A stretch of DNA of 64,000 nucleotides from Diadema antillarum (GCF_040938485.1 NW_027271070.1:2170001-2234000), one strand, 5' to 3'; shown: positions 8,072 through 12,041, counted from the stretch's first letter. Notes: generated by a model not told the origin, from the sequence alone. A program made the numbers and translations.

Positions 8072-8290
8072 TTACCTAATAGATGCAGTAGCGTCCCTGT
8101 TTCTGTGTATGCTTTCTTGCATTCGCGCGTCGGGGTGTAGAACCTCGTTGCTATATCTGTAGATTTCGTACAGGACACATAGATCCCTTATATTCCTGAA
8201 ATGTTCGTCGCTCTGGTTGCGAAATGACTGGGCCAGGTTGCCGATAGCCGGGGTTTGGTTCACGCCTCGGGAATAGCCCTTGCGTTCCTT
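8072..8290 (-). CDS. Exon 4 (terminal) of secreted IL-6/CNTF/Unpaired-like helical cytokine: KERKGYSRG...FRNIRDLCVLYEIYRYSNEVLH...ASIR*
   Basis: Acceptor ttttccaactttcag|AAG; phase 0; 72 codons + TAA; in frame with exon 3; amphipathic helix-D-like segment. Confidence 0.88.
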   Translation of the reverse strand, partial: KERKGYSRGVNQTPAIGNLAQSFRNQSDEHFRNIRDLCVLYEIYRYSNEVLHPDARMQESIHRNRDATASIR

Positions 8291-8671
8291 CTGAAAGTTG
8301 GAAAAATGGGACGGGGAAAAAAATGGAAATGTTAATCAGCAATTTATCATCAACTGAGGTGTTAGGGCCTTAACACACGAACAGTTTCATTTACCACTGA
8401 CGATGAAGTTTTAACATCTATATTATTGTCCTGGGTTTATGACAAGTTTGCAGCAGCTGATACAAGATTGTCAAATTTCCTAACTGGACTGGACTGAGTC
8501 TGACAGTCCTTCTGCAAGTAGAAAGGTCGCTGTTACCTATCAAGGTATTCCCCAAAACAAAATGTTAAAATTATGTGCATTGAGAGACGTGATAGGCGAG
8601 GCGGTATCATAATGCTGATCATGAGGATGATAGGAAACTTATTCATTCACAGAGCTTCAGGGTGCACTTAC

Positions 8672-8968
8672 AAGGTCTCTGATCTTTTGCGTCGCCGTAG
8701 AGATGTGGTCTTTGATGTGCTTGAAGGTAGCGTCCCTGGCGTGCTGGTCCAGGAACCCGTCGGCGCCCATGTACATCGCTTCGTCGGAGATGACGAACTC
8801 CATCGCGCTGTAGTAGATGCCCAGGTTGGCCTCGTGCGTTTCCATCAGGTCCTCCTCGGAGTGGCTTAACCTCGTCGACGGTAGCTCCAGCTCCGTCACC
8901 TCGGGCATGCCCACAATTTTGAACGTGCGAGGGTCGACTTCCGTTTCGACACCGAAGCGCTGATTTTT
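8672..8968 (-). CDS. Exon 3 of helical cytokine-like gene: KNQRFG...IVGMPEV...EEDLMETHEANLGIYYSAMEFVISDE...TFKHIKDHISTATQKIRDL
   Basis: Acceptor tttgccccccgcag|AAA, donor CTT|GTAAGT; 297 nt = 99 codons; GC-rich with strong third-position C/G bias; phase 0-0. Confidence 0.92.
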
Positions 8969-10864
8969 CTGCGGGGGGCAAAGTATCAAAAATAGAGAGA
9001 CTCTTGTCAACGAATGAACATCAATACCTAAGGGCTATATAATCAATCATAATCGTGTGCTTTCGATTCGAGCGGGTTCCTTAATCGAGCTTATTTTCCA
9101 TGATCGATACTACTCTCCCTTTCACGTCCATTTTCGCCATGGTCCACGAGAATGCAATCGCTTCTCCTGCACTTAAAGCACACATTTCAAAAGTATCTTT
9201 ATGATAGCACGGGTGGCCAGGGGGCCGTGGCCAAGGGGCGACCCTCGATTGTTGGTTCCTTCCCCAGTCCACCCCCGCCCCTCCACCCCCACCCCCTCCG
9301 CCCCCTCTCACCACAACAGTCTAATCGATCCCTGTTCGTGTTCGGAGAAATATCAAGGTCACGGAAGAGAAAAATCCAAAGAACGCCGGAACATTGCCGT
9401 GGTATGTCATTGTTAGCCTTTTTGCTATTGTCGGCGACGGAGCATGAATTAATTACCCTTTTATCAGTCCCCCTGACTTATATGGAAAAGAGAATGAGAA
9501 AGAATGCAGGGTTGTAATGGGCCACCCTGTTACACGCGGCCAAATAGTAATCAATATATCGAATCTGTCGCGCCTGATCCGTGAATTCCCCTTCCTTTGT
9601 ATGTTGCTTTTCTCTAAATCCGCGCCTGGGAGAAAACCATGCGATCCTCCTATACTGTCCTTTCTCCCTGCCACTGCCTCAATATTATGTGGAAATATTT
9701 GTAAGGGATTTGTTCCAAGCCCCACAGTTTTGTTCAGACTGCAATACATATTATCATCATCTTTTTAGACGTTGCATATAATTGATGTACATTCATCACT
9801 GGTTGGAGCAACATGATAAAAAACACTGCCATTTCTTCTTCAATTCATAATGCCGAAAATGGCAATTATGTAAGGATAGAAACATACAATCATCATCTTG
9901 ACAATAAGACAACAGTTATTATGATGATAGTGATGATTACCACCCGAGGGAATTAGTTAACTTTTTTTTAAACGAAAATACAAATTTATTGAAACATGGT
10001 CAATAGTGAGCATGATGTAACCACAGATGATTGAATAAGAGCTGTACTGGACAAGAATGTAGTTTGGATAGATGTCCTTCCTCTCTTCGCTCCCCCCCCC
10101 CCCCCCCTCTCTCTCTCTACAGTAGCAAATGAAAAATGGCGCATGATGTGTTATTTGTGAGTGAGCCAGGTTTATACATAAGCTGACTCCCACGGCTTGT
10201 TTGCAGGATTTATGACGTCAGTATCTCGATCAGAGCTGTAGAGGGGCCTGAGTATTCTATTTGTTCAACACTCTTAACACTCTGCAGGAAATGAAATGCT
10301 TGGGACTGGGTGATGTCTTTTAGTTTCTACAGCATGATGAGTGTCACTGCGGGCAAAGTAGTAACAGTTTTGATGACAAGTGGGGAAAAGTATGCGAAAA
10401 GAGGAAATGAAATGGCTTGTGCAATGAAAGTATTCATCTGCACGTTGAACTGGATTCTATTGGCCAAGATGAGTGCACGGGCACAAGCGATTGTGACATC
10501 ATTACTTTGCGCCACTCTCGATCGATAACATTCTTTAGTGATAATAATATCATCACCGCAAAATTTCCCCACATCAACTTTGATCGTATGCTGGGTATGG
10601 GCGCAGATTCTTCTACCAATGACAGAGTGGTTATAGAAATGACATCAGTGATCAATACTCCCTCGTATCAGGATGCATCTCTGGAATTTGGGATTGAAGA
10701 AAGCGAGGAAGGGGTGAGAAAGGGACCCCCTCCCCCTCCGTCAACTCTTACAATACTTCTTGTAACTTACTACCTAAGCTAAGCTCTCTTCTACAAAATA
10801 GAAAGCGCTATCAACATCGAATCGAATCGAATCAAATCAAATCAAATATTGCAGAGGTACTTAC

Positions 10865-11037
10865 AAATTCTGTATAAACGTGCCTCGCGTTATAGGCTAA
10901 TGATAGAGTGGCGTCTGTAAGGAACTGATGGAGTTGTTCTGTCGAAGCTGCAGGTGTTTCGATATATTCCAATGGTGCGCTCGTTGGTGCAGCGAGCGAG
11001 AGGTATGATCTGCCCAGTAACATCAGGCCTAAGAAAG
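10865..11037 (-). CDS. Exon 2 of helical cytokine-like gene: (A)FLGLMLLGRSYLSLAAPT...QLHQFLTDATLSLAYNARHVYTEF
   Basis: Acceptor ttttttttgtccgttacgtccacag|CT, donor TTT|GTAAGT; 173 nt, phase 1-0; completes signal peptide and helix A. Confidence 0.87.
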
Positions 11038-11989
11038 CTGTGGACGTAACGGACAAAAAAAAAGTGAAATATTTAAATTCAGCCAACTGTTTAATTGGAA
11101 ACAAGAATAAATCTTGCAGTAGAGATCATTTATGAGTCGAATTCAAGAATGTGCTCGTGCTAAGTGTCCTCATTTGAATGGATACATGTTTTTAGTTTGC
11201 ATGTAAAAACAAAACATACGACTATACCACTACGCTTCAATCGAAAGAAATGAAAGGAGAGTTCGGAACATAGTTTCATTTGTTGGAGGCATTCACCGCG
11301 CGGAAGTGTCATAACAATGGAGCACGTGGTATGAGATGGGGGAAACAGAAAAAAAAAAAAATCAATAGCGCAGGAATGCAGTCGATTTGGCATGTCTCCA
11401 AAGAGCGTGCAAAAATGCCCTGGCAGCCCCACGTTACGATTGTTTACATTGATCTCGTGTGTACCCTTGGCTGCCAGTTCAAATGAGATATCGAGATTTC
11501 CACAATAAATTCGCATTAAACCGTGGAAAATCCTAAAAAGTGCAGATAATGCAACCGGTTTCGACGGCCAGATGAAGCTATTGGGCATCAACATAATATA
11601 CATAGAGGAGGCATCTCAAATTTGAATTTTATGACAGTCGCAGAGCTCACTGAAACACGTGTGACTTAAGCTAGCTTAGAGCATTCGCGATGCAAACGAT
11701 AAATGTATACATGGTATATATGCGCCGACCATCCATTTTGCTGATTTCATAACCTCTTATCAAACAAACACAGGCACAGCATAGTAAACGCCGTAGCCAG
11801 CAAGATTGATGGGTGCTCATTTCTTAAATAACCGTCACGCATGAAATAGCTTGTACACAAAACATTTGCCTTAGTGCATCGTTACAGTGATGAACACAAG
11901 ATTCATGATTATCATGAGACAAAATAGAAACACCTCGGTTGTCTCAACACTGTAAAAAAAGACAAAAACACCACAGTTGTAAGGCTTAC

Positions 11990-12041
11990 CGCGTGTTATC
12001 GCAAGCACGATGGGATGCGATGAGATGTGTCCATTCCTCAT
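11990..12041 (-). CDS. Exon 1 (coding part) of helical cytokine-like gene: MRNGHISSHPIVLAITR
   Basis: ATG in good context (GACATCATGA), no upstream ATG in the ~145-nt leader, donor G|GTAAGC phase 1, joins exon 2 in frame (G+CT=Ala). Confidence 0.8.

Follow-up and report, generated by a model that had tools for sequence, protein, structure and literature searches.

IL-6-family ligands have been regarded as vertebrate-only on the basis of BLAST-based surveys. Among invertebrates, the Unpaired proteins 1-3 of Drosophila, which are the ligands of Domeless, are secreted glycoproteins held to be IL-6-like and to act on a gp130-like receptor (PMC8226699). For echinoderms, Beck and Habicht (Cytokine 1996; referred to in PMC4503460 and PMC8226699) described an 'IL-6-like molecule' of the sea star Asterias forbesi, which in the literature found is an activity only, without an assigned gene. 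The literature disagrees on whether a sea-urchin cytokine receptor exists. According to a review, the sea urchin is without an apparent cytokine receptor signalling system (PMC3296744), whereas an IL6R-like protein was reported in S. purpuratus (PMC13203501). A literature search by accession and for echinoderm helical cytokines revealed no paper naming the genes described here.

The window, i.e. the whole 64-kb stretch of Diadema antillarum DNA that was analysed, contains a locus that is best explained, with a probability of roughly 60%, as an expressed single-copy gene encoding a secreted ~24 kDa protein of long-chain cytokine fold, nearest to the IL-11/CNTF/CLCF1 branch and acting as a ligand of the gp130/Domeless type. 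The coding region consists of four exons on the minus strand, which by computed splicing are joined in frame to 741 nt, encoding 246 amino acids. The translation is letter-identical to RefSeq XP_071490482.1, an "uncharacterized protein" of D. antillarum, showing that the NCBI annotation arrived independently at the same gene model. The preliminary description had proposed four exons joined through canonical GT-AG sites to a 246-aa protein, and exactly this protein was regained.

All features given below are oriented on the minus strand. The coding part of exon 1 (11990..12041, 52 nt, ATG at 12041) encodes residues 1-17 plus one base, which correspond to the first half of the predicted signal peptide, and ends in phase 1 at a GTAAGC donor that is the same in D. 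setosum. Intron 1 (11038..11989, 952 nt, GT..AG) lies within the signal-peptide coding region. Exon 2 (10865..11037, 173 nt, residues 18-75), equal in size to the corresponding Strongylocentrotus mRNA exon, carries the remaining signal peptide up to SLA33/AP, where cleavage is predicted, then the mature N-terminus, which is conserved, and most of helix A. It is followed by intron 2 (8969..10864, 1896 nt, phase 0) and exon 3 (8672..8968, 297 nt, residues 76-174), whose product runs from the end of helix A through the long AB loop, where G95-x-P97 is invariant, and helix B to the BC loop and helix C. After intron 3 (8291..8671, 381 nt, phase 0), the coding part of exon 4 (8072..8290, 219 nt when the TAA stop at 8074-8072 is counted; residues 175-246) contributes the CD loop, in which both sequons (N185 and N199) lie, followed by helix D and a C-terminal tail that is variable. 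Helix D starts with a conserved E-x-F-R-N-x-R-D. The intron phases are 1, 0 and 0, and every intron was computed to be GT-AG, with the donors GTAAGC, GTAAGT and GTAAGT and the acceptors CCACAG, CCGCAG and TTTCAG in order; a pyrimidine tract precedes two of the three acceptors. The upstream kilobase (12042..13041) probably comprises the 5' UTR and promoter, and the downstream kilobase (7072..8071) is probably 3' UTR. Simple repeats are also present in intron 2: an (AAATC)n microsatellite (10816-10847) and stretches rich in C or CT (~9272-9305 and ~10077-10118).

The IL-11 and IL-6 genes have five coding exons, in contrast to the Diadema gene, which has four and is without an intron between helices B and C. 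In vertebrate gp130-cytokine genes a phase-1 leader intron is followed by phase-0 introns between the helix-coding exons, and the Diadema phases 1-0-0 follow this pattern. When the gene model is combined with the AlphaFold2 helices, intron 1 interrupts the leader, intron 2 lies at the end of helix A and intron 3 follows helix C. The Diadema gene shares a signal-peptide intron with the IL-6 genes, which have been described as carrying a single intron in that region and three more within the domain (preprint 10.64898/2026.04.02.716188).

Transcript evidence was sought in public runs. The RNA-run search with the whole gene as query listed no run, and 19 runs were listed when exons 3-4 were searched across any run type. 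In public run X11, one contig connects 11037 directly with 11990 without a mismatch, skipping 952 nt that end CT..AC on the plus strand; this spliced contig of depth 2 is the direct RNA support in Diadema, and it covers intron 1 only. Exon 3 carries contigs from runs X10 and X11. The X10 contig extends 27 nt into intron 3, across the exon 3 donor, and represents unspliced RNA or DNA, and the small run X11 also contains an intronic piece. For the Strongylocentrotus orthologue, mRNA contigs of 1421 nt (L002) and 3576 nt (L003) map to the S. purpuratus locus as four blocks, equal in size to the exons. The splicing proposed in the preliminary description was observed directly in Diadema at junction 1, and for junctions 2 and 3 the support comes from the spliced Strongylocentrotus mRNA contigs and from splice sites kept in D. 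setosum. The Strongylocentrotus mRNA has an unspliced 5' UTR of at least 443 nt, and contig L003 extends ~2.7 kb beyond the stop codon. In the X11 contig, eight letters upstream of 12051 are loose and could suggest a spliced 5' exon. This was rejected because the genome has no AG acceptor at that point; the unspliced Strongylocentrotus 5' UTR also opposes it.

In the comparison with D. setosum, dN/dS was found to be 0.25, with no indels in the exons and all splice sites kept, and all six differences in exon 3 are synonymous. Introns 1, 2 and 3 are diverged by 8.2% (indels present), 5.4% (98 gap columns) and 6.4% (indels present), respectively. The upstream kilobase is diverged by 3.2%, against the 5.4-8.2% in introns, and the downstream kilobase by 4.0%. 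We conclude that the gene is under purifying selection and is transcribed and spliced. A decaying or mispredicted model, spliced in frame by chance, could be argued from the single depth-2 contig that constitutes the direct Diadema RNA, the intronic piece in the same run and the X10 contig crossing the exon 3 donor. Such a non-functional locus is extremely improbable and close to refuted by the dN/dS value, the exclusively synonymous changes in exon 3, the full-length spliced mRNA contigs in Strongylocentrotus and the reading frames of 240-253 aa, which are intact in four echinoid species.

Orthologues, all of them unnamed, were found in the echinoids S. purpuratus (LOC764451), L. pictus and D. 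setosum and in the brittle star Amphiura filiformis, whose unit is 26% identical to the Diadema protein. An exhaustive search by phmmer, for which exon 3 was the query, returned three true matches plus one spurious TPR protein (P0004), and two further word-indexed searches had brittle-star proteins and metagenome fragments as their sole additions. In the phmmer and word-indexed searches no sea star, sea cucumber, crinoid or hemichordate orthologue was found, which may reflect divergence and not absence. No paralogue was detected by tblastn within the 64-kb window, the ten long ORFs of the window matched no Pfam family, and when synteny was analysed in four genomes, the orthologues had no called gene closer than 10 kb.

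As judged by simple rules, the putative leader is the sole strongly hydrophobic stretch of the protein (residues ~6-28, Kyte-Doolittle score 1.5). It is conserved among echinoids and is interrupted by Arg17 within the h-region. The -3/-1 rule is satisfied by S31 and A33, predicting cleavage after SLA33. The protein contains one Cys (C212, helix D), so that no disulfide is possible within the chain, and a single Cys located in helix D is also found in the echinoid relatives. The N-terminal leader, the SLA/AP site, the one Cys and the sequons N185 and N199 had all been pointed out before, and all agree with the composition of the protein and with these simple rules. Taken from the sequence, these features suggest that a protein of ~24 kDa would be secreted.

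Database searches at the sequence level gave no family assignment. Neither the three main exons nor the orthologues P0001, P0002 and P0003 matched a Pfam family at E values up to 10, and no curated profile of the cytokine clan (IL6, IL11, CNTF, LIF_OSM, GCSF, Hormone_1 and others) was matched. HMMER searches of all PDB sequences with two profiles (A2 and A3) and two single sequences returned chance matches only (E 0.5-6), namely RNA polymerase II, alpha-actinin, arginase and uridylate kinase, which were discarded. A confident match to an unrelated family, regarded in the preliminary description as evidence against a cytokine, arose neither in Pfam nor in HMMER against the PDB. The Unpaired proteins are larger and basic; no Pfam family was found to be common to them and the Diadema protein. 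Protein-language-model features, which are independent of the AlphaFold2 model, placed the ten best named matches all in one helical cytokine clan (Hormone_1, LIF_OSM, CNTF/PRF, IL6, IL11, GCSF). The score was 0.95 for Diadema, with 218 of 256 features shared, and 0.92 for the Amphiura unit. Hormone_1 was present in 24% of the members of the nearest cluster.

The fold was predicted with AlphaFold2 from an 11-row alignment, in which several rows are near-duplicates or fragments of few genes. The Diadema model has a pTM of 0.73 and that of the Amphiura unit 0.79; pLDDT in the helices was ~90, and three of the five models in each run were lower in pLDDT. In the Diadema model the helices span residues 50-80 (A), 113-139 (B), 157-178 (C) and 203-245 (D), connected by AB, BC and CD loops of 32, 17 and 24 residues. 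This is in good agreement with the amphipathic segments delimited earlier (50-79, 113-138, 150-178 and 203-232), and the up-up-down-down long-chain four-helix bundle that had been deduced from them reappears in the model, with CNTF, IL-11 and CLCF1 as the nearest PDB structures.

When 48,161 PDB chains were scanned without filtering, ranks 1-28 were all helical cytokines, with IL-11 (Z 19.1) and CLCF1 (Z 18.7) at the top, and the best non-cytokine reached Z 8.4. The first 45 Foldseek matches in the PDB were likewise all long-chain helical cytokines. Human CNTF (PDB 8d74 chain D, 1cnt), a long-chain bundle without disulfides, was the best single structural match of the Diadema model by VIA-align (Z 20.1, rmsd 2.3 Å, 172 of 174 residues); the structure-based identity is just 11%, and a CNTF match was obtained with neither HMMER nor Pfam. 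Among the other gp130 cytokines, Z values were 19.4 for IL-11, 18.7 for CLCF1, 17.2 for LIF and 15.6 for IL-6. IL-11 (PDB 8qy4, 8dpw, 4mhl) and CLCF1 (8d7h chain D) are secreted proteins of a size comparable to that of the Diadema protein, to which a sequence-level relationship is undetectable. The Amphiura unit also had IL-11 as its top match (Z 19.3, 16% identity), and scored 18.2 with CNTF and 17.0 with CLCF1. The motif resemblances to CNTF suggested in the preliminary description are putative; structure-based identity to cytokines was 8-16%, and HMMER similarity to the cytokine sequences of the PDB was absent. As modelled, both the Diadema and the Amphiura proteins have the long-chain class-I helical cytokine fold. 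A common fold is no proof of function.

A secreted helical bundle with a non-cytokine role, e.g. a lipid or matrix binder, could be envisaged, its likeness to cytokines being convergent or the product of an over-confident prediction. Helical models can reach Z ~14 through arrangement alone, the alignment held 11 rows, pLDDT was lower in three of five models of each run, and neither Pfam nor HMMER against the PDB provided a sequence-level link to any cytokine family. The observed Z values of 19-20, however, come from alignments covering almost the entire target chain and are well in excess of the 8.4 reached by the best non-cytokine, and the same fold and neighbours were obtained from two proteins that are only 26% identical. 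The long AB and CD crossover loops, which an up-up-down-down topology needs, are present, and the model-independent language-model features indicate the same clan. On this evidence a non-cytokine role appears improbable.

The closer question is that of the subfamily. The bundle could be a prolactin, GH or leptin-like hormone, with an endocrine or developmental function through a homodimerising class-I receptor and without an immune role. Prolactin, placental lactogen and GH (Hormone_1) share the long-chain fold (Z 17.5-19.2). In the PDB the best Foldseek E-values belong to placental lactogen, GH and prolactin, and among the Swiss-Prot models prolactin-family proteins come first. By VIA-align, prolactin reached Z 19.2, less than 1 below CNTF, and placental lactogen 17.5; the Hormone_1 share of the nearest language-model cluster points the same way. 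Foldseek TM-scores by target and rmsd values, on the other hand, favour IL-11 and CNTF (0.79 and 0.76 at 3.6-3.7 Å) over prolactin and placental lactogen (0.65-0.70 at 4.7-6.5 Å), and VIA-align ranked IL-11, CNTF or CLCF1 first for both models. For the Amphiura unit, structural identity was 12-16% with the gp130 cytokines (15-16% with IL-11 and CNTF) versus 11% with prolactin. CNTF and IL-11 are without disulfides, which are found in GH, prolactin, IL-6, LIF and G-CSF; GH and prolactin keep two or three, in contrast to the one Cys found here. The Pfam Hormone_1 profile was also not matched. A hormone is unlikely, although somewhat less so than a non-cytokine bundle. Of the IL-6/CNTF assignment made in the preliminary description, the long-chain cytokine fold stands, and the preference for the IL-6/CNTF branch over GH/prolactin is only a lean, given prolactin at Z 19.2 and CNTF at 20.1.

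If the protein is a gp130/Domeless-type ligand, its signal peptide, split by the phase-1 intron, would be removed after residue 33, and the mature bundle would bind to tall class-I receptors (one or more) for cytokines, of the gp130/Domeless type. CNTF itself is without a signal peptide, in contrast to the Diadema protein with its hydrophobic leader. Two conserved patches could form the contacts: the end of the AB loop with the start of helix B would occupy the site I position, and the start of helix D the site III position. An F-x-x-K motif at site III characterises the LIF, CNTF, CT-1 and OSM group. Judging from the aligned ranges, F205 would fall onto CNTF F152, the site III phenylalanine, if helix D is aligned without gaps (model 236 to chain 183). 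The echinoid helix D start is E-x-F205-R-N-I/V-R-D, in which the K position of F-x-x-K is I or V, and in Amphiura the F is replaced by V or I. Receptor engagement would then activate JAK-STAT, and we infer, as did the preliminary description, that the protein may be the missing ligand of the echinoderm gp130/Dome-JAK-STAT pathway.

A conserved, expressed echinoderm gene modelled as an IL-11/CNTF-like bundle is a concrete candidate for the ligand that invertebrates reportedly lack. It bears on what activates JAK-STAT in non-chordate deuterostomes and on the age of the gp130 cytokine family, and is of high interest for comparative immunology. We tentatively consider, as a proposal that is more doubtful than probable, that the family descends from an ancestral gp130-type ligand (IL-11/CNTF/CLCF1-like) of which it is the echinoderm representative, and that the brittle-star gene may also encode a tandem two-bundle protein, an architecture that is not known from any helical cytokine. 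If the ancestral-ligand proposal is true, the IL-6 family is older than the chordates, and the 'IL-6-like' activity described for echinoderm coelomic fluid in 1996 gains a gene. The Diadema gene family is a possible molecular counterpart of the A. forbesi activity, for which no sea-star orthologue was found here. S. purpuratus and L. pictus are genetically tractable laboratory urchins, and the presence of orthologues in both makes the hypothesis experimentally testable. D. antillarum has suffered mass die-offs, so that a candidate immune cytokine in this species may be of practical interest.

Larger collections of predicted structures were also searched. The shape search of the ESM Atlas returned one cytokine cluster (TM 0.62), the rest being noise. 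Among the AlphaFold DB clusters, the best matches to the Diadema model were uncharacterized proteins, at least some of which, judging by their accessions, are presumably from invertebrates, some of these perhaps from arthropods.

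The four minus-strand exons of the candidate gene, namely exon 1 (12041-11990, 52 nt), exon 2 (11037-10865, 173 nt), exon 3 (8968-8672, 297 nt) and exon 4 (8290-8072, 219 nt with the TAA), were spliced by script from positions 7600-12600 and gave a coding sequence of 741 nt. Its translation was identical to the 246-aa protein of the preliminary description. The canonical GT-AG splicing was likewise borne out by direct reading of the donors (GTAAGC, GTAAGT and GTAAGT for introns 1-3) and acceptors (CCACAG, CCGCAG and TTTCAG), with the frame intact and intron phases of 1, 0 and 0. 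An exact look-up showed that this protein, P0011, corresponds letter for letter to XP_071490482.1, "uncharacterized protein [Diadema antillarum]". GC content in the AT-rich window ranges from 0.29 to 0.45 and peaks in the part that holds the candidate gene. No second copy was detected by tblastn in the 64-kb window, no neighbouring called genes were found within 10 kb of the gene in the four genomes inspected, and ten of the longest other ORFs in window positions 1-64000 gave no Pfam family.

In order to collect relatives, an exhaustive phmmer search with exon 3 was run against 1.84 billion representatives, followed by further searches and exact look-ups. The phmmer search returned three genuine relatives, along with a spurious TPR protein. 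Orthologues were found in D. setosum (P0006, XP_072177996.1, 9 amino-acid differences), S. purpuratus (P0008, XP_001200744.1, LOC764451; 240 aa, 53% identical) and Lytechinus pictus (P0005, LOC135156145; 253 aa). In the brittle star Amphiura filiformis, two proteins of 326 and 327 aa comprise two units each (P0003 and P0007) and a third has 162 aa (P0012); two exon-sized fragments (P0002 and P0013) came from marine metagenome scaffolds. All of these relatives lack a name as well as a precomputed Pfam domain. The tandem two-unit genes form an adjacent pair on Amphiura CM076855.1 (locus L005, 10001-12764 and 16726-19600). A single exon, coding for residues 76-173 of P0003, spans the last helix (D) of unit 1 and the first (A) of unit 2; the two-bundle protein may therefore be genuine and not an artefact of gene-model fusion. 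The annotated unit 1 of the tandem proteins has neither leader nor helix A, so upstream exons may be missing from the Amphiura gene models. The metagenome fragments resemble echinoid exon 3 (P0002) and the brittle-star unit (P0013), on the TARA Oceans scaffold L007 and on L008/L009; their source is presumably larval or environmental echinoderm DNA.

Divergence was measured against the D. setosum locus. Exons were 1.9-3.7% diverged without any indel, versus 5.4-8.2% and 29-98 gap columns for introns, and all six splice sites were identical. The estimated dN of 0.016 and dS of 0.063 give a dN/dS of 0.25 between both species. All six changes in exon 3 were synonymous, and four of the nine replacements fell in the C-terminal tail (residues 233-239). 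Sequencing runs of organism B span the whole locus (7300-12700) at roughly 95-96% identity; this divergence is about equal to that of the D. setosum assembly, and organism B is thus probably D. setosum itself or a closely related congener.

This is a genuine, expressed gene, and the splicing proposed for it was confirmed by RNA in part. The run search listed no RNA run matching the whole Diadema gene, and contigs were drawn from two public runs that hold exons 3-4, X10 and X11. A 159-nt X11 contig joins 11037 to 11990 with no mismatch, skipping 952 nt with CT..AC ends on the plus strand, and the gap is exactly intron 1. Further X11 pieces lie within exon 3 (8811-8965) and within intron 2, and an X10 contig runs 27 nt past the exon 3 donor. 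Since contigs of these small runs cover intron sequence beside exons 3 and 2 (8645-8838 and 10659-10845), the runs hold unspliced RNA or DNA besides the spliced form. RNA support in Diadema is thin and comes partly from unspliced material. The spliced contig stops 10 nt before the ATG, at 12051; its 8 extra letters mismatch the window (12051-12060), where the genomic bases offer no AG acceptor. The whole ORF is carried by two Strongylocentrotus Logan contigs, L002 (1421 nt) and L003 (3576 nt), which map to the S. purpuratus locus in four blocks. The middle two, of 175 and 300 nt, correspond to the exons of 173 and 297 nt with some overlap added; L002 and L003 are spliced mRNAs of the predicted structure.

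The predicted secretory features described previously were recovered. The N-terminal window is the sole hydrophobic stretch, with the best predicted -3/-1 cleavage site after SLA33, in agreement with the proposed SLA/AP cleavage. The predicted mature chain has 213 aa, about 24.5 kDa before glycosylation and a pI of 5.45. The translation contains the single Cys (C212) and both predicted N-glycosylation sequons (N185 and N199), of which N185 is retained in other echinoids as N-R-T. Residues invariant or nearly invariant among echinoids and brittle star form two blocks, the first comprising G95-x-P97, L102, R108, E113, E114, L116, H120, N123, A130, D137 and E138, and the second E203, R206, N207, R209, D210, L214, E216, Y220 and L225.

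At sequence level no confident hit to any known family, cytokines included, was found: Pfam searches with exons and orthologues gave no families at E up to 10, and HMMER searches of all PDB chain sequences with the family profiles A2 and A3 and single sequences gave chance matches only. The motif resemblances to CNTF proposed earlier therefore stay tentative. Language-model features placed P0011 beside clusters with Hormone_1, LIF_OSM, CNTF/PRF, IL6, IL11 and GCSF (score 0.95, 218/256 features shared), the ten best named matches all belonging to one clan. The brittle-star unit fell in the same neighbourhood (score 0.92). As these features do not use AlphaFold2 models, this line is independent of the structure models.

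AlphaFold2 was run on alignment A2 (11 rows, P0011 first) and gave a model with mean pLDDT 75.6 and pTM 0.73, the low-confidence regions being the leader and residues 31-43. The expected four-helix bundle was obtained: the main helices were predicted at 50-80, 113-139, 157-178 and 203-245, and the AB and CD loops contain further short ones. Long-chain helical cytokines accounted for all of the first 45 Foldseek matches in the PDB. By E-value, placental lactogen, GH and prolactin came first (4e-3 to 1e-2); by TM-score and rmsd, IL-11 (TM by target 0.79, 3.7 Å) and CNTF (0.76, 3.6 Å) did. Among Swiss-Prot models, prolactin-family proteins led, with IL-11 and IL-6 further down. In AlphaFold DB clusters, uncharacterized proteins matched best, followed by IL-6, cardiotrophin-2 and prolactin clusters; some of the top matches are presumably invertebrate, judging by accession. 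The ESM Atlas shape search gave one chordate cluster annotated Hormone_1, CNTF and PRF.

VIA-align was first applied to Foldseek's candidates. The highest Z was for CNTF (8d74_D; 20.1, rmsd 2.3 Å over 172/174 residues), followed by IL-11 (19.4), prolactin (19.2), CLCF1 (18.7), IL-27 p28 (17.8), LIF (17.2), OSM (16.3), IL-6 (15.6) and G-CSF (about 15). In a second scan of 48,161 representatives, independent of Foldseek, helical cytokines filled ranks 1-28: IL-11 (19.1), CLCF1 (18.7), placental lactogen (17.5), CNTF (17.0), IL-27 (16.8), OSM (16.4), LIF (16.3), IL-6 (15.8) and GH (14.9), then IL-23 p19, viral IL-6, interferons, EPO, leptin and others. Symerythrin (8.4) was the highest-ranked protein outside the cytokines. 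A second AlphaFold2 model, of the brittle-star unit (P0003 residues 140-326, with only 26% aligned identity to P0011; pLDDT 82, pTM 0.79), matched IL-11 (Z 19.3, 16% identity), CNTF (18.2, 15%), CLCF1 (17.0) and prolactin (17.0, 11%). On these models, the protein has the fold of long-chain helical cytokines.

Within this fold we lean towards the gp130 branch on four grounds: it ranks first in three VIA-align searches, its rmsd is lower, the brittle-star unit has a higher structure-based identity to it, and the protein, like CNTF and IL-11, lacks disulfides. Prolactin trails by a narrow margin. The IL-6/CNTF-like reading therefore stands for the gene and the long-chain bundle, but not firmly for the subfamily (prolactin Z 19.2 versus 20.1 for CNTF). 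The two conserved blocks sit at what we take to be the positions of receptor sites I and III of gp130 cytokines. If the helix D alignment is gap-free (236 to 183 in VIA-align), F205 would fall on CNTF F152, which we assume to be the site III phenylalanine; the lysine of the site III motif is not retained in the Diadema protein. The leader intron and phase pattern fit descriptions of IL-6 genes. As a candidate ligand, the protein would bind a receptor and activate JAK-STAT.

The gene is highly relevant to how cytokine signalling evolved. IL-6-family ligands have been reported from vertebrates only (PMC13203501; PMC8226699). An IL6R-like protein has been reported in S. purpuratus (PMC13203501), whereas no apparent cytokine receptor signalling system was described in the sea urchin (PMC3296744); given this conflict, the earlier premise of echinoid gp130/Domeless-type receptors is disputed. 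IL-6-like activity was described in the sea star Asterias in 1996, as cited in later papers (PMC4503460, PMC8226699), and no gene assigned to it was found in the searched literature, from which five accessions of the gene family were also absent. A recent structure-guided search traced IL-1 cytokines into sea urchins and did not cover helical cytokines (PMC13736523). No comparable work on a sea-urchin helical cytokine family was found in a search restricted to non-subscription journals.

Intron 2 contains an (AAATC)n microsatellite at 10816-10847 (within 10739-10919), a C-rich/CT run at about 10077-10118 (within 10015-10195) and a C-rich tract at 9272-9305 (within 9110-9471). Summed contig depth at these three simple repeats reached about 7000 among the runs of organism B; such repeats are common in the genome and do not belong to the gene proper. 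Runs of N occur in the window at 5-158, 20657-20839, 34702-34834 and 36631-36775.
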